A stretch of DNA of 64,000 nt from Trichosphaerium sp. ATCC 40318 (lineage: Eukaryota > Protista > Tubulinea). Each line of letters starts with the position of its first letter. Position 1 is the stretch's first letter. Under the pieces are notes generated by a model. That model did not search any database. It saw only the letters and a list, made by a program, of their open reading frames with translations, and was not told the DNA's origin. Shown piece by piece: positions 1-27,385 of the stretch. Both the position numbers and the translations under genes were made by a program. The DNA lies in the NCBI GenBank assembly GCA_038496445.1, contig JALMLS010000541.1, positions 1 through 64,000 of the forward strand. The letters are read 5' to 3'.

Positions 1-3000
1 TTTTGTCGATCTGAGGAAAGCAGAAAAGGAATGTACGTTGCCAGGCTGTTTGATCATAATCTATACCACCAACAAAGTCTATAGCATCGCTTACTTTTCT
101 AAGAAGAAGATTCATGTGCATAACACGTTTTCGCATATCAGCAGCAAAATTCTTTATGGGTCAAGGAAATTTGCAATAAATCAAAGTAAAAATACAAGCT
201 TGTTTGAGGATACTACCATGGAGTTTGTGAAAAATAGTTTACCGCTTTCTTCTTCATCTTGACTGTTCTCTTGTATTGCCTTTTCTATGTCCCATAGTTT
301 TCTTAACGCTGTTGGTGGAACAAGTTGTCCATGAAGCAATGCTATTAGCGTGTTAGAAGAGGTTGTTGAAGATAAAAACTCAACCTGCAAGAGCTTTTTG
401 GAACTTCTCTCCGAGGCTGCTTATGGTAAGAGCAGCGTCTTTATTCGTTTGGTAAAGTGTTTCAGTGATGAATCTAAGCACAGAGACCTTTGGATTTGCT
501 GGTGATTTAATGTCATTGAGCTAGAAGATCAAACAGTTGTGAACAAGCTAACGGCAATGAATCAATAATGTCTTACCTTTAGTAATGAATTGATATTGAA
601 GCCTCTTGTCTTCCTTGTTGATAAGTGATTCATTACGCCTATTACCATCTAGTAAAGATAAAAAGTTAGTGTAGTTCAAAAAGGGTTGTCGCTATTACCT
701 CCAAGAACACTTTGAAGTTTTTCCCGCCAAGTTCTTTTACAACATTAAGTACGTCCATAACACCCTACCACTCTAAGTTCACATAACCGTGCCAACTAGC
801 CGAGCAGGCGTACGTCTGTTTTCTCTGCAATCGATTCTAAAAATTCTTCTTTCCATTTCATCAATGGTAGACGTGTCACAATGTCAGGACACTCATTGTA
901 CATCTGAATAAAAAATAAACAAAGGCAAGCAAAAAAAGTGCGTTCGTGCCTTAACCAGAAATTGTGATCCTTTCTCGAGTGCATCCATACGTCCTTCGTA
1001 GGCTATACATCGTGCATACTATAACGTTATTTTCTGTAAGTTAAAGATTAGATAATAATCATCCAAATCGTACGTCTTCTTTGTATTCTTGTGCATGTTT
1101 CTGACTTACAAAGATTGGTGTTATCACTTGAAGTACATCTATTGTTATTGTTTTTGATAGTTTCATTTTATGAATGCAATCAATAAGATGTCTCAAATCA
1201 AGGTTTGAAGAACGCAAGAATATCTCTAAAAAAATATCACGTGTTAGAAAGAAAGATCAAAGAACGTGTTGTTTGGCTGCAAGAAAAAAAAGAGATGTTT
1301 TGTAGTTTCTCTTTGCACGTGACTTACTCAGCATGCGTTCGCGCTTTGGTGCCAGTGATATCAATTTATTCTCTTCTTTTTTAACTGTAGGTCCAGCAGA
1401 TACAGTAACGCGACCTGTCTTCATTGTAAACTGTTGTTCTAATACTTCTGCTTTAATTCCATGAAGCTCTGGTTTCATATCGTGGAATATAGTATCCTTT
1501 GTCATAGAAATACTCTTTACCCTAAATAAAACAAAAACATGTCAGACTCACGTGTACGAGTATGTACCCAAGGGTACTGCACTAACCTGTTTGCAATATT
1601 CAAAAATTTTCTTGTTGGTTTCTTTTTAGCACCAGGAGGAGGAGGAGGGCCGGGAGCGCTTGGTGGAGGTGGTGGAGCAGGCGGTCCTGGTACTGGTGGA
1701 GCATTTGGTGGTGAAGGGATTCCAGGTGGAGGTGGAGCGCCAGGAGGAGGTGGAGGTATATCACCATCTGCCAACATCACCTTGTGTTAAGTTAAGCTTG
1801 ATTATTGTTTATTTGAGCTTCTTACCTGTGGTTTTGGATTCGCACGCTCCTTCGCTGTAACGAATTTTTTGAGTGAAAAGAAATTTGTTGTTTTTGTTTA
1901 CCTTGCTTTCTGTTCTCAATGAGTTTATGAACAAATTCTATGAACGCTCGCGTTGGTGCTTGTGGTAATCCGAACGTTTCATTTGCAGGATCTTTTGGTT
2001 TGTTCGCTTTCTGTAAAAATCATCCATGTCAGTACAACAAACTGTTATAAGTCTGCGCATACCTTAACCATTGGAACAACTACCTCAGGTTTGGTTATAA
2101 CTACTTTACTATCTACCTACAATTAAAGTTAAGAGTGACTTATTCTGTTAGTTAAGTGATGATAGGTCCGTTTGTACTTTTTTATCAGATGGTGATGAAC
2201 CTCCACCAGTATTCAATTGTTTTATCTTTTCTGTTAGTTGTTTAATCTTTTCTTCATCGCCTTTAGCCTTTTCTTCTAGCTTTTTAATCGTTTCCATCAG
2301 CTGTTAACAAGGTTAATCGAGGTACCCTAAACTATCACAAATGGGGCGTACTTCTGCTTCAGATGGCGGAGGTGGAGGTGCATCTAAGTCAACCTCAGAA
2401 GTAACAACTAGTGAAGACTCTTCTTCGTCTTTTGATTGTTCTTCTTTTAGCCTCCCTGTAGAGTTGTTATAATCATTGATATAAACGTGAGTCTGTCTAT
2501 AAGTATTCACATACTTGAATTTGATCGTTTTAAGTTGCTACTATTCGCTCTCTGTGAAAGAAAACAAAGTAAGTTTCATGCGAACGAAAAAAAAAGAACA
2601 AGTCAAACTGCACGCACTGATGGTTTTGGAGACTTTAATAATCCGTTTACCTGTATATTTGTGTTAATGGAATATGTATTTAAGGTCATTTCTTATCTTA
2701 CCTTTGTTTTTACATCATACTTAAGGCCGTTATCATTGATAAGTTGCATTAATGATCTAACATCACTTTCAAGACTTCTTGCTAGTTTTTTAAGAGCTCT
2801 TGCTTCTTTATCACGTTTGCGAAGTCTAAGCTTATACTTATCAAGCTCTTGTAATACGAGAGCGTAGTCAGCGCTTGAATTAGCTAAAAAAGAGTGAGAA
2901 CAACCAACAAAAGAATAAAAGATGTCAAAAAGATTACATAAAAAAACCGAACCTGGGTTTGTTGATAGAATTCTATCCTCTTGTTGTAAGTAAGCATCAA

Positions 3001-5406
3001 CCTCTTTTCTTAAAATAGCAACATCTTCATATTTATCTAGTATTTTCTATTCATGTCACGTGTTAAAAAAAAACTGAAAAAAAGTTTTTGTTGGTGACTT
3101 TACCTCAAAGTTCTCCCTCATGAGTCCGGTTTTAGGATGATTAAGTGCAGGTTCTTTTAAGAAACCATATTTATCATTATTTGATATACATATTGTCAAC
3201 AGTCGCAGGAAATTAGCCTGGATGATGTAAGGAATGACGTCAATGTGACATGTTCGTGTTTTATTAAAGTATGTACCTTGAACTCAAGATTTGTACCCTC
3301 CCAAAGCTCTTCTAGAAGATCTCCAGTGACTCCAGTATGTACAACAATGAACGATTTAACAGAAACAATCATTGAGCTAGTTAAAAACACGTGAGCGTTT
3401 TTATGCTTATTACCAAACAAAAGTAATAAACTCAAGTTCGTACTCCACAACTGCATCGTTCTTAGCCATTCGAATAAGTAAACTAAACACGAGAACAACT
3501 TCTTCAATATCAACGCAGTCTATAACACTAACCAATAACTTGAGGTTATCAAGAATGGTCAAGCAAGTTTTACTGATCTAAAGAGTACCTATTAATGAAG
3601 CAATTGTAGACTTAATCCTACGTAAAAAAACCCGGCTTAAACAAAAATATCACGTGACACCTTTAGCAACTTTGGTACCCCCAAAACCAGAAATGTTCAA
3701 TAACAGATATTAAAAAATACGCACCTGTTCGTATCGTACAGCGTGATCAATTGTGTGAACCAAGTACTTCACCATATCGATATCTTGATCAGTAAATGTA
3801 CGTGCTGCGCTCCTATCCATCTCGCGTTATTAATGAACCGATAATGAATACTACTAGCTATATTAGCCATACCTAATCTTACTCATTTTGAAGCTAAGAC
3901 ATTCAACTATCCAAACTAATCCATCACGCCTTATAAACTCTTTTCTCCAGTTTTTAATATCCTCCTGTGCAGCCTTTTCGTTGTCTTTTAAAAATCACTT
4001 ACACTACTCTTAGTACCTTTCTCTTTACACTTAACTTTGAGTTTAGGGTAGTAAGCACATCAATTGTCACATCGCCACGCTTTAAAAGGCCTACAGTTTG
4101 ATTAAAAACATATCCACGTGGCGCCTAAAATGATCTTTTTTTGAAGTTTTCGGAAGTACCTATAAAATACTCTGGTTCTTGTTTTCTTTGCATGTGCTTT
4201 TCTTGTGCTACACGAAGCTGTTGAATAAGCGCCCATTTTTCACCAACATTAGTTCTTTTTGGAATAACACCCGTTGGAAGTGATCTCTAAATATCTTTCA
4301 ATTTAATCTTGATACATATTATACAAGGAATCATTTGTACGTACACATGCTTTCTTATACATACTATCAATTTCGCGAACAGACATGAGCTTATTTATGT
4401 CAAACTTTGAAAAAAATTAGCGGCAACAAAGAAATAATACACGAAAGGAAAAACTTGTGGGTTCCTTACGTCGAAATGAACTTGCATGTGGATTTGACCA
4501 AGTTTAGTTCCAGAAAATTCCTTTCTAAAGCCAATACCAGAACCAGTTTTCTCTCTCATTTTCCTAAAACGCCTTCTCTTCAACTACACAGACAATTATT
4601 TTTATTGTTTTTTTTTGCTTCTTGAAAAAACTTGCTTACTTGTATCCAAAAGTCGTGTGGCTTATTATCAGCGAAATTGACCACAGGTATTTCAACAACA
4701 CCCATGCTTGCTGTCATAATAAAGTTGACATATTCGAATACTTCAACACGTAATAAAACAGGATCTGATTTTGTTCCAAGGTCATGAACTATCCTATAAA
4801 AATCCACAAAAATTAAATCACGTGATACTTGTCTTCCATGGTTTTAACGTTATTTCAGTAAAAATAAAAAAAAACAGACACGTGACTAATAATAATATAT
4901 CTTACGTAGCTGAAGTGAAAGCCCACATGACCTTACCCTTATCTGAAGCGATTGGCGCTAAAAAACACAAAAAGGTTACTACTTGTGGGTTTTTTAACCA
5001 AAATTCAACAAAAAAAATCCTAACGCGTACGGCTTGCTTCTTTGTGATGTAGCACGCTCATTGTCACCCACGTATTATTATTAGAGAATCTTCCAGCTAA
5101 ATTTATTAACAACCAACAAAAATAAAACAATCACGTGCTTCGTTACAACGAAGTCTATAAGATAAGAAAAAACCTATGTTTTCGGTTTTCAAAACAAGAC
5201 AACAATTTACCTCCGCTTTTCTTTTTTCCTAGCTGACCGATCTGTCTGCCCTCTAATATCGTCACTTGTAACAAGGCCTTGTCAAAATAAAGAGTTGGGT
5301 CAAGTTTGCCAACGTGATCCTCTAATTCATCTCCAACGTCTCCAACTGTATTCCGCTCAAACCCAAAGGCATCTTGAGCGAGAGTGTCTTCACTACTGGA
5401 TTCCAT
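1..5406 (-). CDS. Multi-exon formin with N-terminal C2 domain (C2 - GBD/FH3 - coiled coil - FH1 - FH2); 3' end runs off the window
   Basis: Spliced by eye. C2 motifs LQVTILEGRQI and LRVEVFEY...MGVVEIPV; GBD-like NWRKEFIRRDGLVWIVECL; poly-Pro FH1 (1620-1760); FH2 motifs IVTRLPLMKWKEEF, VIGVMNHLSTRKTRGFNINSLLK, LNDIKS...VLRFITE. Confidence 0.8.
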
Positions 5407-5847
5407 CGTGTATTAAGGATAGCAACACGCTACAGTTTATACTTTATATTAATTAACGCGTTATTTGGCAAAAAGAAGGTGGCTAGCAATATGAGAAAGA
5501 AAGACTTAATGAGAGAAAGGTGACTTGTTTTTTTTTGTTTTTGATTCTCAAAAAGTCCGAAATACTCCTATTCACGAAGTGACGTTTTGTGTTATGATCA
5601 CACGAACTGTAATGGTTAATGAATACAGTATTCCGACAATGTAAGTATTTCCTTTACCCCTATTTTTGTATTTTCTGCACCTCATGTCTACACGGAATGT
5701 TGAACAGCAATATTTATTCTATTTTTCAAGATCAGTTTTAATGCCTTTTTTTTTAGTTTTTTGGAGCTTCGATAATGTTCAATAAATGGAGGTGTGCGTT
5801 GAAATACTTTGTAGTCAAAAAGCGCAAAACTCACTTTGGAAGCACGT

Positions 5848-6685
5848 TCATTTATAATATTTACGTTTTTGGTTCCTCTTTGCTTTTGAGGTTATTTTAG
5901 TATGAACAGTGCGCAAAGTATAAACACCATTTAGTGATTTGATGCCTTCATCTGTAGCAGAAGTATAAGAGAGATCAAGTGTATGAACGCCTGCCAGTGA
6001 TTTAATGCCTTCATCTGATATTTGCATACATCTAGTAAGGTCGATACTATGTACACCAGCGAGTGCTCTTAAACCTTCATCTGTAACAGAAGTACGAGTA
6101 AGGTTAATGGTATGAACACCTACAAGTGCTTTGATGCCTTCATCTGATATTTGCATACATATACTAAGGTTGATACTATGTACACCAGCGAGTGCTCTTA
6201 AACCTTCATCTGTAACAGAAGTACGAGTAAGGTTAATGGTATGAACACCAGCAAGGGCTTTGACACCTTCATCGTCAACATCAGAACATTCAAGATTAAT
6301 CGTATGAATGCCAGCAAGTGCTAATACCTTTATCTTTCATATTGCAAAATGGAAGATTTATGGAATGAACCCCGGTAAGTTGTTTTATGTCTTTGTATGT
6401 TAATTGATGTCTGTATGTTGATGTTATATTTCGACAATCAGCTAATAATGAAAACAAATTAACTTTCTTCTTTATACAAACGCAAACCATAGAATTTCTC
6501 ATAATACCCTTGTACTGTGCGATCCTCACCAAGTCTGGAATATTGTGAATATAGACACGTCCATAGCCAACAATGGCGTGAATGATATCAGCCAATATAC
6601 TACAAGATTGAGCAATAGAGAACTTATCTTTCTCTCTTATTCGACATACAATCTTTGAAAGAACTTCTGGTGGACAATCAAGCAT
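5848..6685 (-). pseudogene. Intronless F-box + short-LRR (GVHTINL family) gene with one frameshift at ~6322
   Basis: F-box-like MLDCPPEVLSKIV...IAQSCSILADII, then LRRs. The sequence 'ggt att a gca ctt gct ggc att cat acg att' breaks the KGI-x-ALAGIHTINL frame. Could instead be an assembly error. Confidence 0.75.
6005..6249. repeat. Near-identical 129-bp tandem duplication (two LRR units, 43 codons)
   Basis: atgccttcatctgatatttgcataca...tatgaacacc starts at 6005 and again at 6134. Confidence 0.9.
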
Positions 6686-7396
6686 ATTCGCCCTAAATTG
6701 TTTTAGTAACAACTCTTTGTGACTAGAAAAACACAACTTATGTATGTATTCAAACTAAAATGTACGACTTCGGTATTGTTGATTTGTTACGGTGTTGTAC
6801 ACATGTCATTTCAAAGATTACACTTGACACATAACGGCACTGAAAGATAAATGTTCTTTAACCACAAAGGTGAATTGTAGAAGAATGTTTGTTTTTCTGA
6901 GAAAAATATCAACAACACGTACTTTCTTGGTTTGCACTTTGTCAAATTAAGATTCTTTGGTTGTTGTCCAACGTTCGTAAGTTGTTGCGTGATGGTTGTA
7001 TCTGAGACGTTTAATATAGTTTCCACTTGTTTTACGAAGGTTTTGTGTTCTGGTGTAATTTTATTAAATAGATCCTTGTGGTTCTTGTGATAGTATGTGA
7101 GGGCTTGTTCTACGGTGATACCACAAAAACTCATGATTTGCTGTGTTTGGAATGCGATAACCAGTTTGCAACAACACTTAACTCCTTAAGCTAGATTGCC
7201 AAGAAATTTGAAAAATAGTCATTCTTTGTTAAGAGGAGATTTCACCTGTTCGAACCAAGGCTGATTGCGTGGGTTAAAGTCTGAGCGTGGAAACGGCTTT
7301 CAACTTTACTAGAGTAGCATTCACTTGTACAAGTAATTGTAGGTAACCGTTTAATAATGTTTGTGCCTAGTAGGGACCGGACCACTACCTTGTCTG

Positions 7397-9846
7397 TTAC
7401 TTTCTGAACGGTACGGGTTCCTTTGCTGGTAATCCTCTAGGGTCTTCGTCAAGTGGAGTTACATCTGCAGTCTGCAAATACCATTCTAAGAGCTCCTCAA
7501 GTAGTTCTACACGTTGGGTAGAGTACCTAAACAATACATTACTTTTTTTTAAGGTCACTTTTCAAACTCACGATGGATCGTTATAAACGTTGTTCAGTTC
7601 TCTTGGATCTTTTTTAATATCATAAAGCTCATTAACACCGAGCGGCCTGTAAACCATCTAGATTCCAAAAACTTAGTTTAAAGTTGCGCAGAAGAACGAA
7701 CTATTGAAAAAATAAAGAATTCTGTCCTTGTCGAACCTTAAAGTCCATTTTTCGTATCATTACACAACGTGGTATTCCATTAGGTTGTTTTTCTTCTTCT
7801 CCTCTTGGATAAACCATACGAGTCTTATCCGCATATGTTTTAGCTTGCTCTGGATCATAGGGCTCAATCTCCTGTTGCAGAAAGGTCAGCGCCAATAGTC
7901 TTTGGAGAAAGTAGTGTACATAATGGTAGTAGTAGCCTCCTTCGCTGAATACTGCACGATTTACATCACCAGTGCTTCCTTTTAATTCTGGCACAAGTGA
8001 TTTTGAAAAATGTACACGTGTATCATTAATGCCTGCAAGATCAAGGATAGTAGACATAATATCAAATTGAGCGACAGGTGTCCTACGAAAATAAGCATCA
8101 ATCTTAGAAAGTTTGTTTGATGCTTGCGTACTTTACACGATGACCTTTTACACCATCTGGTATGCGCATCATCAATGGAACATGTGTTAAGATATCATCC
8201 ATACCACCAGGCCATTTTTCGACAAGGTGGAAATCACCCTTTTATTGCCTTTAGTTGTGAATAAATTTCTGATTTTTTTCTTACTGAAAAGTCTCCATGA
8301 TCAGATGAAACTATAACTGCTGTGTTATCCCAGTACTCGCTTTTTTCAACATAGTCTAACATTTGACCAAATACCCAATCTAATAAATTGATAAGCGCAA
8401 CACAAGCTAAGCCTCACTTACCAGAGTACGAAATTAGCCCCAAGTATACTGCATTTATTCTATAGAACAGATCATCATTGAAGTTTGTCAAATTTCTATA
8501 ATATTGAATGCCCTCAGTTGGTGAATGATATTTTGGTTTTTCTATCCCATCCATTAGCTATTAAAAAACATAAAGAAGTTTCGCACTTGGATTATTTGGT
8601 GGTCTCAAAGGTGCTTTTTTCTAAACGTGATTGTTAGTTGCTCAGAAAAAAAAAGTTGCATGTACCTTTATTTCATCTGGATTGTACATGCTGTAGTACG
8701 GATTCGGAGCACCATAAGGTGGATGAGCTCCAATACCAGGTAAAAATATCATCCAAGGCTCCTGAGGGTTTGTCTCTAAAAACCGAATCGCACGTGTTAC
8801 TGCGTAGTAATCCCTTGCCAAAAGAAATTAGCAACAACAAAGCACTGTTTTCCCTTTTTCGTTCTTTCTTTACCTGTTATTGGTTGAATTGTACGAGTCT
8901 GTATCAGGCTTGTCCAAGTACGAATAATACCTATAACTAGTAAACAAGCGTAAAAAAGGCCATAAGCTGATATTGATCACTTTTTTTTTGCGTTCGAAAA
9001 CTACAAAGCGTACCCTGCCTCACCAAATTTGAACATGGGTCCTCCTCTTTGAACGCCTATATCGTCTTCCCAATATGTAACAGAGTCTGGGAACGCTTTT
9101 TGACTAAACATATCGTTCTTTCCAAGCCATACAACAGTATAGCCATCTTCCTTCAAATACTTGAACAGATTTCTTTCATAAACTTGAACAAGATGCGTCT
9201 GAGTTCTATCCTCAAAATTAGGAACATACAGGCCTACAAACATAATCTAAACGATTTTCACCTGTGACCAAGAACCTAAAAAACCCAAAATAGTTACTCA
9301 CGTGATATTTCAAGTAAAGGAAAAGTAGCTAAAGTGTTCAAAAATACTGTCGTATAACTTAGCTAGGGTTATAGGACGAGTTGTTGCAGGTACGAGGTAA
9401 GTAGAATTCTAAGTTTATTAATCTTATTACAAAATAAGGAACTTCGTTATATTCAGATAACGAATGACGGATATGAATGTGTTCATATACGACAATACAA
9501 CGAATAAACAACTTCGTTACTCACATGCAAGTATCTTCCTGTAGTGAGTGCGCAGCGACTTGGAGAGCACTAGTTATAAAACAAGTTAGTTTAAACCAAA
9601 AATAAATGCAAGGCATGTCGGTAGTCTTTGTTAACGTACTTGGGTATGCTGCACGTGAGCATTTTCAAAAACAGTGCCCATGGAGGCTAAGCGATCATAG
9701 TTTGGTGTTTTTGTTATAGGATGACCATAAGTACCAAGAGACTCTGCTCTTGTCTCATCTGGAAAGAAAAAGATAAAGTTTGGCTTCTTTGCAGCCAGTA
9801 CCAATCCTAATAAACATAATAACACAATCGTTGCGATATATGTCAT
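7397..9846 (-). CDS. Secreted formylglycine-dependent sulfatase, multi-exon
   Basis: Signal peptide; KPNFIFFFPDE; spliced catalytic motif HTQ|CSPSRCALTTGRY (CxPxR); VIVSSDHGD; ELYDIKKDPRELNNV; ends ...PVPFRK*. Confidence 0.9.
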
Positions 9847-10623
9847 TATCACGTGTTAAGTGTAGTGGACTGAATAAGACCAATTTTTTTATGTATACTA
9901 TGACTGTACCGTTATGCCCAAGATTAAACCGTCTGGATCCAGCAAAAATACATAAACATCGGACCTAGATACGCTTCTGAAGTTCATCTAATACGACACT
10001 ATTAGGGAAATTTTGTCAACTTTATTGTTACTGGAATTGCTTGATAAGAAATGTCTCCTTCATTCTTCTTTCCTTTCCAATGTTACGTAGAAGCAGTCGC
10101 AGCACCTAACTCCTCTACGAAATATACAACTTTGTAGCAGTTAAGCCTGATTAGGATCGACGGCTGTTTTGCGTTTGCCGTTAACAGAATGGTAATTTTT
10201 CTAAAACTCGTGATTGTCGAAACTACTGCCAAGGTGTAACTTTAGAGAAAAGTTAGTCTCCCTTAAAGTTTAATCATTAACCGTGCAATGATTAGCTTTG
10301 GCACCAGTGACGCACAATTTTGTTAGAGTGGTATACGCATTTAATAACCTATGGGGCCACAAATACCAACGGGTTATCCACCCAAATTCCATAGTATTCT
10401 TTCAATCATAAATGTTTGCTAAAGAAACTGGACGCCGGATTTGTAAGTGTAAAAATCACTAAGGCTACATTCATAGTACATCCGGTAGTAAATACTGAGA
10501 TCATCTTCCCTGGTCTGTTGAAACTGACATTGAAAAGTTTGTTATAACTTAAGGTACTTAAGTCATACTATGAAGGACACAATGAGACATTTTGAGCCAC
10601 AACAATTACTTTCAACATCTTTT

Positions 10624-13600
10624 ATGGAGCACACTCATTGGAATCAGTCTTTTGACACAAGTGACAACACACAACAGCTAAAAATATCGTTTCGCGTCAA
10701 ATTCAAGAAAGAAACGTACAGAATACGTACATCAACGTATGGTACAGTAATTCAACTCAAACAGGCTGTATATAAAGTGATAGGGGTTAAACCACATTTA
10801 CAACGTTATCCTTCACTTGATTACTCGGAGTACACCAATGTAATGTACGGACTGGCTTACGCCGGTCAACTGTAATCAACCCAAATAAACACACTTAATC
10901 TCCTCGAGTTCTCCAAGCACCCTCTCCTGTTATATTTGACGACACGAATCGATTTGAACACACCATGAACACCCTCAGCGATCTAGAACGTACATTAGCT
11001 CCTTGGAATTATCTACCGGACTTCGACAAAATCAAAACGGCACGAAACACGCGACTGAAATTGCTCTACAAACAGAAGGACTTCAAAGCCGACACGGTTT
11101 CCGAAACCGACTTCATTTCCAGCCAAGCCACAGCCCCTCAGCTTCCCCGCAGCGGTATTCTGTTTTTCTCTGGTGCGCCACCTTCCAAGAACTCGCCTGG
11201 GATCCGCGAATGGTTAAACTCGATGAAACGGCACACCACTACTTATAGTTGGACCGACAAGCAGTTTGAAGGCGTTTTGCGTTCACATCTATCAGGTTTA
11301 GCCCTTCAGAAGACACGAAACCTCGCGTACAACAACAAAGCTAAGCACCAGATCGCAGACCCTACCGCAGACGAACCGTTGGCTGAACGAACGATTTCTT
11401 CTGCTTCATACGAGCTAGTACACACCTTGGTATTAGCGTACGTCCCAGCAACGACCGAAACCGACACACGTGAGAAACTTCGTACGCTTGTTCACCGCGA
11501 TACCGAAACTGTGGCAGATTTCTACAACAAGATCCAGAACCTATCCTACGACGCCGGTTACGCTCCAGAAGACAAGTATCTTCTCGACAGATTTATCGCC
11601 TGTATTCACAAGAATTATTTTGCTCTCCTCGTCTCCCAGCAACCAAAGACCATCACAAAGGCTTATTCACTGGCTCAAGCGATGGAAGCCTCTTTTCAAG
11701 CCCGCGAAACTTCCATGGCATCTTCCGCTCCTCCAGCTACATCTCCTTTGCCTTCTGTCAGTGCCATCTCCCCTCCTCCCTCCTCCCAGCCTCGACATGG
11801 CCATCTCACATGTTACTATTGCAAGAAACCAGGCCACATCAAACGCAATTGCCCTATCAGACCGAAGAGACCAGCTAAATATGAACGACAGCAGTGGTCT
11901 CAACGTTTCAATCAAAGACGCCCTCGACACTTCGGTCCAAGACGCCCTCCTCAACGCCCTCCTCAAAGACGTCAACGCTGGAACGTCAACAACGTTGAAT
12001 ACGACGCTTATGGCTATTCTCAACCTCCTCCTCCTGGCTACTACAACGCTCCTCCGTATGCTGTCCCTTCTCACTGGCCATACTACGACCAGGGAAACTA
12101 AACTACAGCGCTTTTGTGGCTAGCGCTCGGAAAAATAAATTGGCCGCACCTCTACAACCTCTCATCGGCACGTGTTTTCTTTCCAATTCACAGTTTCCTT
12201 GCCTTTTCGACACTGGCGCTTCAGTGTCAGTTTTATCATCTCGTATGGTTTCATTACTAACACATTCTATGACACCAACGACGTCTCCTTCTACTGTCAA
12301 CGCTTTTGATGGCTCCGCTGTACGAGTGTTAGGTACCATTCACCTAGACGTTCGTCTTGGGATACGTACTCGATCAATTCAGTTCCTGGTTGTCGACTCT
12401 TCCAAGCACGACGTCATATTAGGCATGGACGCCTTGCTCGCTTTCAGTGCTGTCCTTGATCTCCCAAAACAGCAAATTCTACTCAAAGAAACCGCTTTGG
12501 AACCGTCTGTCACCTGTCATGTCGAATGTTACGCTACCACACGTAGTTTCATACGTACGTCCTCTGCTATTACTGTTCCTCCTACTGACGCTGATATGCC
12601 TCACGTCATCTGGACACAAACGGATAAATCGTACGACGTACAGGAAGGCTTAGTGTCAACCATACACGATCATGACCTACCAATATCAATCGCTCGAGGC
12701 ATGGCTGTTGCACGTGGTAATAGGATTCCGTTGTTGGTCTCTAACCTCTCTGGTAACACCGTCACCATTCCCGAAGGCACAGCTCTCGCTACGTTCGACT
12801 CAAACGCTGTTGAGAAACTCAGACACGTCAAGTCCGAAGTCATCAGAGCACTGAGAAAAATGAAACACCTCCTCAACCCTCGTAATTTCACACCACATGT
12901 CAGGCGCGAAGTAGACAGACTCTTTGGCGTTGTCAAAAATTCTAATTTAACCCATTCTGAAAACAAAGTTTTTCTTTTATTTTTATTCCATTTTAGTCAT
13001 ATTTTTACTAAAAACCCTAAGACACCTCCTGAAGCGAATGTACCTCCTCACTTGATAGACACCGGCGATGCTCGTCCTGTGCGTGTCCCTCTGCGATCAT
13101 TCTCGCCCCCACAAGCAGAGTATATTGCCGATATGGTCAGACAGCTGTTGAAGGATGGTATCATTTGACCTTCAAAGAGCGCCTGGAGTGCTCCTGTCCT
13201 ACTTGCTCTCAAGAAAGACGGCACAAAACGCTTTTGTATCGATTATCGCTCTTTAAATCGTGTTACAAAAAGGGACGTCTTTCCTCTTCCAAAAATTAAC
13301 GACGCTCTCAACCATTTACAGATGGCTAAATTCTTTTCTGCTTTAGACGCTCCCAACAGCTTTTGGCACATACCCATTGACGAACGAGACAAACACAAGA
13401 CAGCATTCGCAACTCGTGATGGTTTATACGAGTGGAATCGGATGCCTTTTGGGCTAACCAACGCTCCTGCTACATTCCAACGTACTATGAACACCTTGTT
13501 GTCTGGATTAACTTGGCACGTTTGTCTCGTCTATATGGACGACATAATAATTTATTCAAATTCCTTTTTAGAGCATTTGCTCGCTCTCATTCTTGTTTTC

Positions 13601-16600
13601 GATCGAATTGAAGCCTCTGGTTTCACATTACGATTTAAAAAGTGTCAATTTTTTCAAACAGAAATTTCTTACCTTGGACATCTTATCTCCTCTGCAGGTG
13701 TTCGTCCTGATCCTGACAAGATTGCTGTCATTGCTAAATGTCGTCTTCCGGAGAATATCTCTGAGCTTCGTACGTTCCTTGCTACTGCAGGCTACTACCG
13801 TAAGTTCATCAAGGATTTCGCCTTGATCTCGGAACCGATGCAAAAGTTATTGCGTAAAGACATCGAGTGGTCCTGGATAGACAGTCAAATCAAATCCTTT
13901 GATGATGTTAAGAAGCGGCTAACATCTACTCCTGTACTTGCACTACCTCGCTTTGATCGCGCATTTCATTTGTATACGGATGGCTCTGGATATGCTTCAG
14001 GTGCAACTCTTGAACAGGACGACGATACAGGCAAAAGGCGCGTCATTGCATTTTTTTCTAAAGCCCATTCAAAACACGAGCGAGTTTATAAAAACACTAC
14101 AGAATGGGAAATGTTAGCTATTATTCGCGCCCTTGATAAGTTTAGGCCGTACCTGCTGTACAATGATGTGCATATCTACACCGATCACCAAGCTCTGAAG
14201 TGGATTTTTAAGAACAAACATCTTAAACCCAAATTCGCTAGGTGGATCATGAGGATGGAAGATTTCAAATATACGGTTCACCACCGTCCTGGCACCCAAC
14301 ACGCCAACGCAGACGGACCTAGCCGTCGTCCCTTTGTAGATGTCGCCAACATCTCATCCTCGTCAACCTCCGACAACACCGTCCACACACAAAAGATAAG
14401 TGCTACTGATACTCTTTTCTCCGTTAAAGAACAGCTCGCTGATGAAGTTTTAGGTCCTCTACACGTTTTCCTTTCCAAAGGACATGTCAAAACTTCAAAA
14501 CCTTTGCTACGACGTATACGTGCTATGGCCAAAACTCATTTCATCGACGCTGCTTCTGGACTTGTGTGCCGACGGTGGGCTTCCTCCAAAGATGAATCCA
14601 GCGAAAGTTACGTACAGATTTGCGTGCCAAAATCGCACATTAAAATAGTACTTGCTGCTTTTCACGATGACCTAGGTCATCAAATGTACATGAAGCTACT
14701 CGCTCTTGTACGCCGTCGATATTGGTGGTCCACCTGCAACAGAGATTGCCGCGAATGGTGCACCAACTGCAAATTATGCTCATCACGCAAAACTCCGCGT
14801 GTCAAGCGTGTCTTTCCCTTAGGAGCTACACCTGCATCCTGTCCTTGGGAAAAAGTTTCAATTGACACACTCAAATTACCGACCACTCCATGTGGAAACT
14901 GTAAAGTTGTAGTTGTCACTTGTCTTTTCACCAAATGGGTTTGCGCTAAGGCGTTCTCCGACGAGGAAGCACCAACTGTTGCAAGTTGGCTTGTAGATGA
15001 CATCTTTAGCACATGGGGCTATCCCAAGTTCCTGCTCTCCGATCGCGGTGCCAATTTCCTCGGCACTCTCATCCAAGGGATCAACGATTTGTTTCGCGTT
15101 AAGAAACTCAACACTACTGCATATCACCCACAAACCAACGGGCAAGTCGAACGTTTTAACCGCACCATAATTGAAATGCTCTCTATGTACACTCTTGGTG
15201 GCTCCTTCAACTGGGATAGAATATTACCACAATGCATCCAAGCATACAACTTCTCTCCCCACTCTTCAACCAAGATGTCACCATTTCTCCTCATGACTGG
15301 ACGCGAAGCTAACTTACCGATGCAATCTACCATGCCTACCTTCGCTCCCCAACACGCTTCCAAACGCGACTATGTTCACGACCTGGCCGATAGAACCAGA
15401 AAAGCTCAAGCACTTGCAAAAGGATACAACCAGAAAAGACGCGAATATAACAAGGCTTATCACGACCGAACAAACAACGTATCACTCAGAACCTACGAAG
15501 TTGGCGATCAAGTTATGGTTTACCTTCCAAAGCCACATGGCAAGCACACGACAAAATTATCCCACCATTGGACTGGACCATTCGCCATATCAGCTAAAGT
15601 ATCAGACCTCGTATACGTACTCGACAAAGATGATGATGACGGCGGCTGGCATCCAGTTGTTAATGTCAGTTGCCTCAAACCTTCCCACCTCAACAGTTAC
15701 AACGATGTACCTCAAATTCATAATGACATTCCACACTCGACAATACCATTATCCACTACACGCTCCCTTATTCCTATTACAACGGCACAACCTGTAGATG
15801 ATGACGATGACGACGACGATGACATCACAGATGATTATTCAAGACCCAAAAGAACAAAACGAAAACCTTTCAGTTTCTCGGACAATCTTAAATCTTCATT
15901 GGAACTTCTTCAAATTAAAGCTTTATCCCTCAGACGCGGAGATGCCTGGCGATCGATGATAGAACCACTTACTAGACTCTTGGCCCTAGGATCGTTATTC
16001 ATTACGAACAACAAAAGATGCGAATATTTTCAGAATTTTATTGATAATATTGACTCAAAAGCAAAACTACTAGCACTCCTGGAAGATTGTGTTCTCAACT
16101 TTGACCGAGTTTTTGCATACGAAATTTCAAAATGGTGAGGTACTTTATTGCCTGATTCAGTTATGGTTCCTGTATTTGGACGTTGAAACTATGAAGACCA
16201 TGATTGATCACGCGCTTCACTATGTGCTCTACTCAAAGAAGGGGAGGATGTAATGTACGGACTGGCTTACGCCGGTCAACTGTAATCAACCCAAATAAAC
16301 ACACTTAATCTCCTCGAGTTCTCCAAGCACCCTCTCCTGTTATACCAACGTACGCTATGAGGGTTCAAAACCAGTAAACAAGAAAAAAGTTTCAAAATCC
16401 AAAATATGCTTAACGAAAGCTGGAAAATTTTTTTTCCAAAACAATATCATAAAAAATTGTAACTAACAGGCTGTGAAGGATGAAGTGCTCCCCTATGAAA
16501 TACTTGGTATAACATATGATTGTGAAGTTATACTAAAGACAGAGAAGAGTCCTGTTTCATCAGTGGTACAAGGGCTAAGGTACTTTGTTGTTCAAAAAAA

Positions 16601-18011
16601 GAACACTTAAAATCTAAGTACCTTTGTTTGTTAGCACTGAGCCCGATTGTAACGCTAGAACCGCACTGATTTATAGTTTACTTCAGGCTATTCAACCTTA
16701 TACTGATGATAGAAACGACATACACATACAACAAAATATACAACATGTGGAAGATGGTGGGCAAACAGAACCTAATATTTTTTGTTCGCTGAACAATCCA
16801 ACTAAAACATACTTCAATTTTGCGATTTACATCTACACAAGTGATCCCACATGTGACCAAAGCGAGTATGTATATGTTGAATATCCCATACTTATCATTG
16901 GCATATTTGAAAATGGTAAAACGGGAGTTCTAACATCCATGGAGGCAAGTACAACTTGATAAACTTGATAGCAATATTGAAGAAAGCTTTCAAAAAAAAA
17001 CTCACGAATACCTGTATAATTATTTATTGGACGTTCTTGCTAGTTTTACTCTAATTTTTTTGTTAAGGGATTAATAAACAGGAACAAAGTCATATCAAAA
17101 ATGGAATATATGACCGTTTGGAATGAATTTGTAAGGGAAGGAGTGACAAGCGTTGTTGATTTAACACCAAAAAGTGTTGCAATATTTTTTTCAGGTTTTA
17201 TGGAAAGTGATTTTGACCTCGAGATACAACTCAAGCGTCCCAAAACAATAATTAATGTGGACCCTGAAAATACAACAGACAAGATTTCAATGATGCCTCC
17301 AGGTACATCTTTGCCACATCTTCAACAGAGATCTTTTGTATCAACAAACTGTTTTGTTGTTTACAATTCTTAGAAATAATCACACTCATATTGGAACATC
17401 TCGACTGTGTTTCAACAAAGTGCCTATTAACAGCATGCCAGTTTCTATATGATTCTGTAAAATCCAATATTCAATATTACAGTGCTGTCAGTCTGATTGA
17501 AAGAGAAGGTCTTCCAGACCATAACAAGCTGAAACATGTCAAAGAGATTGATATCAGATTCATGTGTAAAGCGGATGCTCAACGTCTTTTACAACAACTA
17601 TCAAGAGAAAGAAACAATATAAAGACAATCAAGACATACCACAGAGATACATCATACATTGAGAAGCAGTTGCCAAGAGCTTCAATAACACCGCAAAGGA
17701 TCTATGTTTGTTTTGTACCCAAGACCACAATTCAAAATAGCCTTATTTGTCTCATACACGACAAAGTAAGTGCATCTGTTTTGCTAAAAGAAGACGACCA
17801 GCCACATCAACTCAGGATTTTTTCAAAGTTTCTGAGGTGGTATCCAGAGATAAAGTTGGTTCAGCTCTACAACAGTCACTACAAAGTATCTCATTTATTT
17901 CGAACAATATGCCAAGAGATGAACTGTAATATCTTCTTTTGTGGAAGTATCAAAGAAGACTTTTTGCAAGAGTATTTTCGCGCAAAAGATAAACAATTCT
18001 GTTTCTCTTAA
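10624..18011 (+). CDS. Ubiquitin-like-domain protein, paralog 1; interrupted by the retrotransposon and carrying an internal deletion (may be a pseudogene)
   Basis: Ubl-like pattern VKFKKETYRIRTSTYGTVIQLKQAVYKVIGVKPHLQRY...|DEVLPYEILGITYDCEVIL; colinear with 25420-27385. Start codon uncertain. Confidence 0.65.
10839..10934 (+). repeat. 5' LTR (96 bp, TG...TA)
   Basis: tgtaatgtacggactggc...cctctcctgttata, identical to 16249-16344; AATAAA at 10884-10889. Confidence 0.95.
10965..12101 (+). CDS. gag: Retrotransposon Gag
   Basis: 378-aa ORF; capsid-type motif HRDTETVADFYNKI; zinc knuckle CYYCKKPGHIKRNC; basic and Pro-rich tail. Confidence 0.92.
   Translation: MNTLSDLERTLAPWNYLPDFDKIKTARNTRLKLLYKQKDFKADTVSETDFISSQATAPQLPRSGILFFSGAPPSKNSPGIREWLNSMKRHTTTYSWTDKQFEGVLRSHLSGLALQKTRNLAYNNKAKHQIADPTADEPLAERTISSASYELVHTLVLAYVPATTETDTREKLRTLVHRDTETVADFYNKIQNLSYDAGYAPEDKYLLDRFIACIHKNYFALLVSQQPKTITKAYSLAQAMEASFQARETSMASSAPPATSPLPSVSAISPPPSSQPRHGHLTCYYCKKPGHIKRNCPIRPKRPAKYERQQWSQRFNQRRPRHFGPRRPPQRPPQRRQRWNVNNVEYDAYGYSQPPPPGYYNAPPYAVPSHWPYYDQGN
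12092..12148 (+). promoter_or_regulatory. -1 programmed ribosomal frameshift signal (G GGA AAC slippery heptamer plus predicted H-type pseudoknot)
   Basis: Heptamer 12092-12098 lies just before the gag TAA; the -1 frame is open into pol. Stem 1 AGCGCT 12107-12112 / 12122-12127; loop TGTGGC can pair with GCCGCA 12143-12148. Confidence 0.8.
12092..16138 (+). CDS. pol: Retrotransposon Pol (protease, RT, RNase H, integrase) with one in-frame TGA at 13166-13168
   Basis: LFDTGA (PR); RFCIDYRSLN, MPFGL, YMDD (RT); LYTDGS, YTDHQAL, NADGPSR (RH); HHCC, SIDT, LSDRG, NGQVERFN, WTGPF (IN). ORFs 12116-13168 and 13322-16138 share a frame. Confidence 0.93.
16235..16248 (+). other. Polypurine tract
   Basis: AAAGAAGGGGAGGA directly abuts the 3' LTR. 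Confidence 0.9.
16249..16344 (+). repeat. 3' LTR (96 bp)
   Basis: Identical to 10839-10934; followed by CCAA. Confidence 0.95.
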
Positions 18012-22770: not shown

Positions 22771-22900
22771 TGTATTCAAGACAATAAATATCTTTGTATG
22801 CCAAAATATTCAGAACAGAGAAACTGCAAGTAAGAAAAAAGTCAAAGAGGTTCCTTATCTGTTTTGTTCTGTGTTGTGATAGCATTGAATATTACATCAC

Positions 22901-24946
22901 ATGTTGTGTAAACAGCGCTTTGATATGATGCTGTATTGTCTGGGTTTAATCAGCTGCTTTTTCTTTCTGGAAGTACAAAGCGCTATCTTTAATATAAAGG
23001 ACTATGGAGCGGTTGGTAATAGGTTCGCGTGTTCGCTTCAGTTTTAATAACGTTGTCAAGGTGATGGTCGCACTTTAAACACAAAGGCTATCGCTGCAGC
23101 CATAAACACAGCATACAAGCGCGGTGGTGGAACTGTTCTAGTACCAAAAGGTGTATTTGTGACAGGTGAGGCACTAAACGCATTATTGTCACGTGTTCTT
23201 TTTTTTTTTTTTGCTACTCTTAGCGCTCTGTAGGTGGTTTCAATATTACCTCAAATGTATCATTATATTTGGATGACGGTGCACAGATTAGAGCTTCTGA
23301 TAACCCAGCAGACTATGTATGCTTACCCAGGTAACAAAAGGCATAAAATCGCCAAAAGACAAAGCTAATGTTGTTACCCTTGGTTGACTTCAGCTGTAGC
23401 CTTACACCTGTTGACAGTGGGGTATGTGACTACCCTTTGGTAGGCATTCCGTATGCACAAAACGTCAGTATTGTCGGTAGTGGACGTATAAATGGTGGTG
23501 CAAATGATCCACCAGGCAAGTAAACTTCTCACTTATTGTTTGACAATAACTAGGTCATCTTGTTGATCACTATGATCCAGTTAACAATATGCTACGTCCC
23601 ATACTTTGGAATATCACAGGATGTACGTTTTTCTCATTGTTGTGATGAATACAACTTATAATTTTGCAAGTTTCTAAATGCGTTTTTTAAGGCAAGCCTG
23701 GAGCTTACTTTTGTCGTCCCAAGCTGCTTGTTATCAAAGAGAGTTCTAGGGTAAGTCTAAGAGGCGTAACATTAGAAAACAGGTACAACGAGTCTTAAAA
23801 CGCTAAAAGTTCAGTTACAGATTTGATTCTTTTTAAGCCCTTTTTGGACAGTTACAATTGATTCTTCACGTGATGTTGTTATTGATGGTTTAACCGTAGT
23901 TGGTGATAGGTAATTTAATAAGTACATTATATGGCTAATTATTGATGTAGACAATGGCCAAACAACGATGGAATAGATCCAATATGTTCCGAAAATATTC
24001 TCATTAAAAACACAAAAGTATCCACTGGAGATGACGCTATTTGTCTAAGTGCCCATAGCAGTAAAAAATCCAGATATATAACAGTACAAAACTGTACTTT
24101 ATCTTCAACTTCAGCAGCTTTGAAAATAGGTGCAATATTTGATACCTCTCCTACAACGATCCTTAACTAAAAAACCCAAAAAGGTGGATACGCTCATTCA
24201 GATTTTACAGATATTTCATTCTACAATATAAACATAGTTGATACTAATAGGGCTCTAGCAATAATGCCTAGGTACTATATACTTTACTATTTCTAAAATT
24301 AACTTAATGAAGGAGGGGCAGTGGACATATAAGGAACGTACGGTATGCTAACATAAGTATTGAAACAAGATATTTTTCAGGTATCATTCTTTTCTCTTTT
24401 GACTTTAAGGCTTTTGGTCTTTTTCTTGTTTACTAAAAATAATCATAGAGGCTTGGTGGGGTGCAGCGGAGCCTATATACGTTACATCATACAATGCAGA
24501 TAGTGATACAAAGTATACTGGAACCATAAATGATATTCGGTTCGAAAACATTACAGCAAAAAGTGAAAATGGAATTGTTGTTAGTGGGAATGCTAGTCTA
24601 ATAGATAATTTGATTTTTGATCACGTGCATGTGAATATTTCTCGATTTAGTAATATATCACACCCAGTACATGATTGGAGACCAAAGAGTGATCCAAGCA
24701 TCGTAAAAGCACTTATTGGTTCGTCTTGCGACAGCTATGCTTCAAACTTTTATTCTCACTTTTTCATCTTTAGATGGGTTCTTTTTGAGTGGTGTTAAAC
24801 AAGGATTGATAAGCGAATGTATAGTTAGCCATGGCAGTGATGTTATATCGTTGTACGGTGAATGTAAGAACGTTACAGAATCAGCACATATCACAGTACA
24901 CTCTCTTCAATGTGTCGAAAACTATTCCACTGTTGAAGTACAATAA
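22901..24946 (+). CDS. Glycoside hydrolase family 28 (polygalacturonase-like), secreted, multi-exon
   Basis: Signal peptide; IFNIKDYGAVG, GGGTVLVPKG, NNDGIDP, TGDDAI, ALKIG, NRALAIMPR. Confidence 0.88.
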
Positions 24947-25419
24947 ACTGTTGTTCTACGAACTAGCATTCTTCCAATATGAACGACATGAATAAAAAGT
25001 TGAACTTAAGATGTACAATGACATCCTTAACAAGGAAAAGCTTATAATTTTTACAGCAAAATATCATATCATAAATTGCAAGAACACAACGAACTTTTTG
25101 TACACTAAAATATTTTTCCTAACCGCATTGTACATTACTTTTCTACTTGTGAAACTCATCACAAATGATTCAACTTGTTATTCAAAGTAAAGGAGAAAAC
25201 ATTTGAGCTGGTGTCGTCATTGAGACAGTATTCGTAAAAAACTGTAATATTCGCGAACTAAAAATTGCTGAACCCGAAATCACGTGTTAAGTTACATCGT
25301 TCTGCGTAGTATAATAGAACGATTCTTAAGCTCTTTTCTTCTTGGCACACCAAGGATAAGGCGAGGTATGTTAAGTTACATCTTCTACGTTAACACGTTG
25401 ACAATTTCAAGGCGCTTTT

Positions 25420-27385
25420 ATGGAGCACACTCATTGGAATCAGTCTTTTGGCACAAGTGACAACGCACAACAGCTAAAAACATCTTTTAACGTTAAATTC
25501 AAGAAAGAAACGTTCAGAATACGTACATCAACGTATGGAACAGTAATTCAACTCAAACAGGCTGTATATAACGTGACAGGGGTTAAACCACATTTACAAC
25601 GTTATCCTTCACTTGATTGCTCGGAATACGCCAATGTACGTTGTTTTTAAACACAAGTTCTTATTCCACGTGAACCCATCGGAGACTAACCTGCTTTGAA
25701 GGATGAAGTGCTCCCCTATGAAATACTTGGTATAACATATGATTGTGAAGTTATACTAAAGGCAGAGAAGAGTCCTGTTTCATCAGTGGTACAAGGGCTA
25801 AGGTACTTTGTTGCTAAGATGAAAAAAATAAAGTAAAGCTAAGTACCTTCGTTTGGTAGCACTGAGCCCGATTGTAACGCTAGAACCGCACTGATTTATA
25901 GTTTACTTCGGGCTATTCAACCTTATACTGATGATAGAAATGACATACATATACAACAAAATATACAACACGTGAAAGATGGTGGGCAAACACAACCTAA
26001 TATTTTTTGTTCTCTGAACAATCCAACTAAAACATACTTCAATTTTGCGATTTACATCTACACAAGTGATCCCACATGTGACCAAAGCGAGTATGTATAT
26101 GTTTTGGATGTATATTTTGTTTCATTCCAGCTTATCTGACATAAAAATAGAAAAGTATTGTGCTCCAAAGAACTCAAAGAACACTCAACTCTTTCAAATA
26201 TGTATTGGGTATCAATTTACATTCCTGACGTTACAAGAGTTGGGCTTCCCAAGTTTAATGAATATCCCATACTTATCATTGGCAGATTTGCACGTGATAG
26301 AACAGGTATTCTAGCATCCATGGAGGCAAGCACAACTTGTACCTTTATAAAGTTTATAAACACCTTTAATCAAAAACAAGAATATCTTTGTAATCAGTTC
26401 ATTAATGGACTATGTTTTCCTCTAATTTTTTTGTTAAGGGATTGCTAGATAAGAATGAAATCATGTCTAAAATAGAATATATTGCCGTTTGGAATAAATT
26501 TATAAATCGGGGGGCTCGGCTGGCAGGAGTTATTGATTTAACACCAAAACGTGTTGCAATATACTTCTCAACCTTTAACCTTGTTAATTTTGATTTCGAG
26601 ATTCAACTCAAGCGTCCCAAAACAATAATTGATGTGGACCCTGAAAATACAACAGACGAGATTTCAATGATGCCTCCAGGTACCTTTGCCAGATAAATAA
26701 ACTTCAACAGATCTTCAATGAACCGTTTTGTTGTTTACAATTCTTAGAAATAATCACGCTCATATTGGAACATCTCGACTGTGTTTCAACAAAGTGCCTA
26801 TTAACAGCATGCCAGTATCTATATGATTGTGCAAATTTGAGTATTCAACATTACAGTGCTGTCAGTCTTATTGAAAGAGAAGGTCTTCCAGACCATAACA
26901 AGCTGAAACATGTCAAAGAGATTGATATCAGATTCATGTGTAAAGCGGATGCTCAACGTCTTTTACAACAACTATCAAGAGAAAGAAACAATATAAAGAC
27001 AATCAAGACATACCACAAGGATATGTCATACATTGAGAAACAGTTGCCAAGAGCTTCAATTATACCACAAAAGATCTATGTTTGTTTTACAAAAAAGTCC
27101 AAACTACCTAATTGCCTTATTTGTTTAGTACATGACAAAGTCAGTGCATCTGTTTTGATTCTTGAAAAAGATCAGAATATTCAACTCAGGACTTTCTCAA
27201 GCTTTCTCATCGAGTTTCCAGAGATAAAGTTGGTTCAGCTCTACAACAGTCACTACAAAGTATCTTATTTATTTCGAACAATATGCCAAGAGATGAACTG
27301 TAATATCTTCTTTTGTGGAAGTATCAAAGAAGACTTTGTACACCAATATTTTAAGGCAAAAAAAACACGATTCCATTTCTCATAA
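25420..27385 (+). CDS. Ubiquitin-like-domain protein, paralog 2 (apparently intact; shows the empty insertion site)
   Basis: High identity to exons of 10624-18011; keeps the ~156 bp missing from paralog 1. Confidence 0.7.

Follow-up and report, generated by a model that had tools for sequence, protein, structure and literature searches.

A young Ty3/gypsy insertion one nucleotide before a splice donor in Trichosphaerium: a rebuilt donor that probably follows from the LTR end common to the whole clade

Can a retrotransposon land in a coding exon and hide there as an intron? This question is raised by a 64,000-nucleotide (nt) stretch of DNA from the amoeba Trichosphaerium sp. ATCC 40318 (contig JALMLS010000541.1, positions 1 to 64,000), hereafter called the window. 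In it, a Ty3/gypsy retrotransposon of 5,506 nt, bounded by long terminal repeats (LTRs), is inserted in sense orientation between the second-last and the last base of exon 1 of a host gene, that is, 1 nt upstream of the splice donor of intron 1. An initial annotation of the window had described how the first bases of the LTR rebuild that donor, and had proposed a splice-site-targeting strategy or a selected, "silent" mode of integration in which the whole element is spliced out. We found the described geometry to be correct, and the evidence gathered here supports neither proposal. In our judgment this is probably a young chance insertion on one haplotype that disrupts its gene, the rebuilt donor being a by-product of the LTR terminus and an accidental position.

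The junctions read as follows (all features of the window given here lie on its forward, or +, strand). In the allele that carries the element, host exon 1 (10570-10839, 90 codons) ends ...TAC ACC AAT, and GTAATG follows at 10840-10845 as a candidate donor. The last exon base, T at 10839, is the first base of the 5' LTR (10839-10934, 96 nt, TGTAATG...TGTTATA) and replaces a C, a synonymous change from AAC to AAT; the Asn codon, the intron phase, and the GT are all restored, as the initial annotation had said. The C that was displaced is now at 16349, 3' of the 3' LTR (16249-16344), and is followed by the former intron 1 at 16350-16478. This intron has GTACGC as its donor, TAACTAAC as a branch-like motif, and GAAG at its acceptor, which places the original donor 5.5 kb downstream of the new one. 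Copies of a target-site duplication (TSD), CCAA, flank the element at 10835-10838 and 16345-16348. Its length is set at 4 bp because other copies of the family fix it, namely TTTA at a full copy on contig C561, and GCGG, TCGA, and TATT at solo LTRs.

The empty site had earlier been reconstructed as TAC ACC AAC/GTACGC (a slash marks the splice or insertion boundary), and it can be read directly on contig C343, as GAGTACACCAAC/GTACGC (GAG TAC ACC AAC/GTACGC), with a single CCAA and without the LTR. A tandem paralog at 25421-27385 has exon 1 at 25421-25635, ending TAC GCC AAT/GTACGT at the same phase-0 intron (25636-25701), again in agreement with the initial annotation. C343 (31.4 kb) is colinear with window positions 1-30560 at 96-99% identity with a few large indels, and is most simply the alternate haplotype. 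Within exons 1 and 2, the window and C343 alleles differ at 10583 (T/C), 10652 (T/C), 10655 (A/G), 10657 (A/G), 10781 (T/C), and 16539 (A/G), and in the junction codon (AAT/AAC). The insertion is real and polymorphic, and probably heterozygous. It is also recent. The two LTRs do not differ at a single position, whereas LTRs of an insertion dating back to the haplotype split should by now show about 3.8 differences (allelic synonymous divergence, dS, 0.04); the insertion is therefore younger than that split.

A repeat misassembly could in principle have joined the element to the gene, and contig C192 gives some reason to ask, as it ends inside the element and duplicates window positions 1949-11948 at 100% identity, a sign that this region was difficult to assemble. 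Against this, both junctions are present on the window contig (C76) with a perfect 4-bp TSD that occurs once at the empty site, the 5' junction is found independently on C192, and colinearity with C343 extends to either side of the element. We consider an artefact extremely improbable. The tail of C192 (101162-113109) matches window positions 1-11948, with the 100% identity applying to the 10 kb checked, and is a redundant assembly overlap at a heterozygous, repeat-bearing locus rather than a second insertion.

The rebuilding of the donor can be traced to the terminus of the element. Four sister families (C160, C10, C545, and C417), with 52-59% identity in pol, have LTRs of 95-107 nt that start TGTAAT, and TSDs of 4 bp. 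TGTAAT is thus the ordinary LTR terminus of the clade, an integrase end sequence, and nothing peculiar to the window copy. As every LTR of the clade starts in this way, any sense insertion at position -1 of a donor automatically recreates a pyrimidine wobble base followed by GTA.

Whether the position of the window copy reflects targeting was addressed at 12 readable insertion sites of this family and its sister families (further LTR matches of the C417/C507 family lie outside this count). The TSDs at these sites (CCAA, TTTA, GCGG, TCGA, TATT, CTTC/TTTC, TTAC, CATA, TGTG, AACA, CTAC, and ATGG) have no motif in common. Any nucleotide followed by GT directly after the TSD was found at one site, that of the window copy, with ~0.7 expected by chance, and none of the eleven other insertions is positioned to rebuild a donor. 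A GTA within 4 nt of the TSD occurs at two of the 12 sites, again with ~0.7 expected (P about 0.14). The second is an LTR on C576 with the 3' flank TTTC/AG GTAATT, where a donor-like sequence begins 2 nt past a TSD that is not perfect. These two sites are what speaks for an integrase that, by itself or through a tethering partner (for example, part of the spliceosome), steers integration to exon-intron junctions. At the ten other sites GTA is absent from the vicinity of the TSD, and in the integrase C-terminus Pfam detected SH3_Tf2-1 but neither a chromodomain nor any further targeting module, so we view such targeting as very improbable, and the strategy put forward by the initial annotation finds no support in the clade. 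That the donor position exceeds chance cannot be shown from one event that was picked because it is striking.

Two further designs were considered and set aside. The C576 LTR does not qualify as a second silent rebuild, given the imperfect TSD and an offset that would put the reading frame out; it was treated as ambiguous. Sister-family ends (TGTAAT...ATTACA) combined with a TSD that begins with G would provide GT...AG, and removal of such an intron leaves 4 extra nt. Placing the other insertions relative to exons by open reading frames (ORFs) was uninformative because the exons are short.

A restored GT is not in itself a good donor, and we judged its quality against the U1 small nuclear RNA (snRNA) of this amoeba, genes for which were found at C122:19165-19328, C144:124528, and C100:91164. 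The U1 5' end is UUACGUACCUG (...ACGUACCUG), as against AUACUUACCUG in canonical U1, and the base facing donor position +4 is G. The optimal donor is therefore CAG/GTACGT. GTACGT is also the commonest hexamer among crude donor candidates in the window, in agreement with the U1-predicted donor and with the donors of the host gene and paralog. The old donor, GTACGC, pairs with U1 from +1 to +5, whereas the rebuilt GTAATG pairs at +1 to +3 only and has T rather than G at -1. The rebuilt donor is less good than the host's own (GTA vs. GTACG), and by this pairing appears possible but poor. Donor statistics derived from ORF continuity (counts, an enrichment table, and expectation-maximization over candidate introns) were too noisy for a trustworthy matrix; among eleven GTA 5-mers compared in these crude statistics, GTAAT and GTACG ranked highest for enrichment.

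Splicing out 10840-16478 on paper leaves the AAC to AAT change as the only difference, and the protein is unchanged up to exon 3. To this extent the earlier claim of splicing with no coding change stands. It does not extend to exon 4, which is hit on the same allele by a 156-nt deletion described below. The intron to be removed would be 5,639 nt long, compared with 56-152 nt in the host gene, or 40-100 times the local norm, as the initial annotation had itself cautioned. The LTR also carries signals that could compete with such splicing. Reading through from exon 1 into the LTR leads to an in-frame TAA at 10873-10875 and a predicted truncated product of 101 amino acids. The sense AATAAA to which the initial annotation drew attention lies at 10884-10889, 45 nt past the new donor, and is likely a poly(A) signal; AATAAA is also found 3' of the stop codons in the host gene and the paralog. 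Putative acceptor AGs at 10907-10908 and 10916-10917 follow a branch-like CTTAAT motif and could yield cryptic introns of 69 or 78 nt from the new donor, either of which would lead to a stop 19 codons later. A solo LTR as a self-contained intron was rejected by counting, as use of the same AGs (LTR positions 70 and 79) leaves 31 or 22 nt, out of frame.

What the filled allele could still encode further downstream depends on the structure of the host gene. On the C343 allele, the gene model has six exons (270, 101, 235, 141, 235, and 638 nt; 539 codons) and five GT-AG introns of 133, 56, 61, 152, and 71 nt. In the window, exon 2 lies at 16479-16579, exon 3 at 16635-16869 with the donor GTATAT at 16870, and exons 5 and 6 at 17068-17302 and 17374-18011, ending with the stop codon TAA. 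Between exons 3 and 5, the filled allele alone carries the 156-nt deletion (breakpoint 16878-16879), which takes the 3' part of intron 3 including its acceptor and ~104 nt of exon 4. The deleted sequence is kept in the C343 allele and in both paralog alleles. Reading through the deletion gives a frameshift with a stop at codon 236. Such a second lesion does not look like the mark of an allele that selection has kept silent. As the filled allele is heterozygous, young, and damaged a second time, its survival needs no silent splicing.

The host gene is a real one. All intron positions are shared with the tandem paralog, and the ratio of nonsynonymous to synonymous substitution rates (dN/dS) between the two is 0.62. 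The host protein was searched exon by exon. It had no Pfam family, with a sub-threshold ubiquitin-like hint at most; word searches with exon 1 and exon 6 returned no relatives and no transcript-derived protein; and exon 1 matched only two spurious repeat proteins among 1.84 billion representative proteins. An exact look-up of a neighboring ORF gave no hit either, in a collection from which this genome's records are possibly withheld. This is a lineage-specific (orphan) gene that is fast-evolving, under moderate constraint, and provided with a back-up copy.

The selected silent insertion proposed by the initial annotation can now be weighed. It holds that the donor at 10840 and the acceptor at 16478 are used and the 5.6-kb intron is removed, resulting in a normal mRNA, and that this is why the copy survives. 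If the two LTRs recombined, a solo LTR of 96 nt would stay behind, as was correctly stated, and the locus would persist with a 229-nt intron. The exact restoration of codon, phase, and GT fits this proposal, as do GTAAT donors that work elsewhere in the window, the precedent of Evelknievel in Arabidopsis CMT1 (PMC6238269), and reports of LTR-derived introners (PMC12130899). Opposed to it are the weaker U1 pairing of the new donor with the old one still present downstream, the AATAAA and intron-sized cryptic acceptors within 80 nt of the new donor, and the great length of the intron. In addition, a heterozygous insertion younger than the haplotype split has had little time for selection, the second lesion argues against the allele being kept intact, and neither the word search nor the representative search returned a transcript-derived protein of the host gene family. 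We therefore think a selected silent insertion unlikely.

A related possibility is that the clade terminus, T/GTAAT, serves as a built-in 5' splice site, by which elements inserted in sense orientation at a donor, directly ahead of one, or within an intron would be processed out. We hold this to be quite improbable. If it were true, the locus would be the first step of an LTR element joining an intron, caught in the act, with a 96-nt solo-LTR extension of the intron to follow and the empty allele in the same cell as an internal control.

Overall, a chance event with damaging consequences remains the reading that we favor. A Ty3/gypsy element would have integrated by chance at the end of exon 1 in an orphan gene that evolves fast and has a tandem paralog. 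Most transcripts of the filled allele would then be expected to fail, by ending at the LTR AATAAA, by splicing to a nearby cryptic acceptor, or by reaching the in-frame TAA; splicing at 10839^16479 would make up a minor fraction at most. The filled allele would be null or strongly reduced, and would be tolerated thanks to an intact second haplotype and an intact paralog.

Several observations weigh against a disruptive chance insertion. The prior for a sense insertion at exactly -1 of a donor is roughly 0.1% per insertion. In other eukaryotes, U1 that occupies a donor can keep a poly(A) site a short way downstream from being used. GTAAT donors are in use in the window, as the initial annotation had noted: in a GH28 gene, GTAATA (23016) and GTAATT (23910) are the donors of introns of 45 and 41 nt, respectively, and are taken as used because splicing joins the conserved motifs DYGAVG/DG and VVGDR/QWPNNDGIDP. 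The donor of host intron 4, GTAAAA, is as weak as the new donor. Skipping of the exon 4 remnant (16870-17067) would keep the filled allele in frame (492 codons), the only way in which it does so. Finally, dN/dS between the alleles is 0.23, which indicates that the filled allele was constrained until recently.

As it stands, the locus represents an ordinary young polymorphic insertion, of use mainly as a sign that retrotransposons were recently active in this amoeba. Should correct splicing of the filled allele be demonstrated, the locus would illustrate cleanly, in nature, how an LTR retrotransposon can enter a gene without cost to the coding sequence where introns are normally very short. In either case, the filled and empty alleles are available side by side for direct comparison.

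Some observations on the surroundings can be added. The GH28 (polygalacturonase-like) gene, at 22926-24950 (+), is interrupted by a large number of very short introns (those checked measure 41-45 nt), and its donors are varied (GTAATA, GTGAGG, GTAACA, GTACGT, GTAAGT, and GTAATT). The ~90 nt directly 5' of the host ATG (10490-10579) have at least 35 further matches across the genome, with 82-91% identity, and contain the palindrome ACTTAAGGTACTTAAGT. This dispersed repeat could be an element similar to miniature inverted-repeat transposable elements or short interspersed elements (MITE/SINE-like), or a shared promoter module. C343 (about 7772-12767) holds ~5 kb that is absent from the window at 22787-22794 and has tandem-like internal repeats and only short ORFs. 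LTRs were not found in this stretch, by which the haplotypes again differ substantially in structure.

The element itself is organized as follows. A gag ORF with a CCHC zinc knuckle (10965-12101) is followed in the -1 frame by the protease (PR) part of pol (11999-13168), which ends with an in-frame TGA (13166-13168). The same frame then continues (13169-16138) through reverse transcriptase (RT), RNase H (RH), and integrase (IN; H2C2, core, and SH3_Tf2-1). The order of Pfam domains is zf-CCHC; RVP_2/gag-asp_proteas; RVT_1; RT_RNaseH; Integrase_H2C2, rve_3, and SH3_Tf2-1, and a polypurine tract, AAAGAAGGGGAGGA (16235-16248), adjoins the 3' LTR. The TGA between protease and RT is the only interruption of pol in the window copy, and could represent decay, or read-through or recoding. 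Exactly one internal TGA was also seen genome-wide in several unrelated gypsy pol matches. A stretch resembling a primer-binding site (PBS) follows the 5' LTR at 10935-10951 and reads TT+TGACGACACG; it is TGATGACACG in the C561 copy and TGGCGACAC in all four sister families. The motif is TGACGAC here, compared with TGGCGAC in the sister families, and the first triplet of the stretch in this family is no longer complementary to the tRNA CCA end. The family is small, with ~10 LTR matches in 70 Mb that comprise two full copies, ~4 solo LTRs, and one fragment. The second full copy, on C561, carries a 2.07-kb insertion and TGA stops.

With direct LTRs, a short TSD, a CCHC motif in gag, the pol order PR-RT-RH-IN, a polypurine tract, and a -1 frame relation between gag and pol, the element joins the Ty3/gypsy group (Metaviridae) as a new member with few copies. 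It differs from the usual members in its very short LTRs (96 nt), in ends of the form TG...TA rather than TG...CA, in the 4-bp TSD, in the altered PBS-like stretch, and in the single in-frame TGA of pol. Retrotransposons with specific targets are known, such as Ty3 and Dictyostelium elements at tRNA genes and Utopia at U2 snRNA genes (PMC4640811). The clade described here has no recurrent target in comparison, with one of 12 sites at a donor.

Introners are intron-generating transposons in which an element end and the context of the target site together form a splice site (PMC9860276, PMC12130899), and LTR retrotransposons make up ~12% of classified introner families (PMC12130899). They are short, occur as multiple copies spread over many unrelated genes, and bring along or generate the splice sites at both ends. 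The window family, by contrast, has two full copies and ~4 solo LTRs instead of many near-identical intron-forming copies, none of its other copies lies at a splice site, and it supplies a donor only; its 3' end with the TSD, ...TGTTATA+CCAA, provides no AG. A parallel is Evelknievel, an LTR retroelement in exon 13 of Arabidopsis CMT1, the removal of which by the spliceosome rebuilds an intact mRNA; cDNA demonstrated this splicing, which occurs in dependence on whether the element is silenced (PMC6238269). Both are LTR retroelements within a coding sequence that are removable by splicing, in our case on paper. In the Trichosphaerium locus, the donor would be the first bases of the LTR, and the acceptor would be that of a host intron that was already there.

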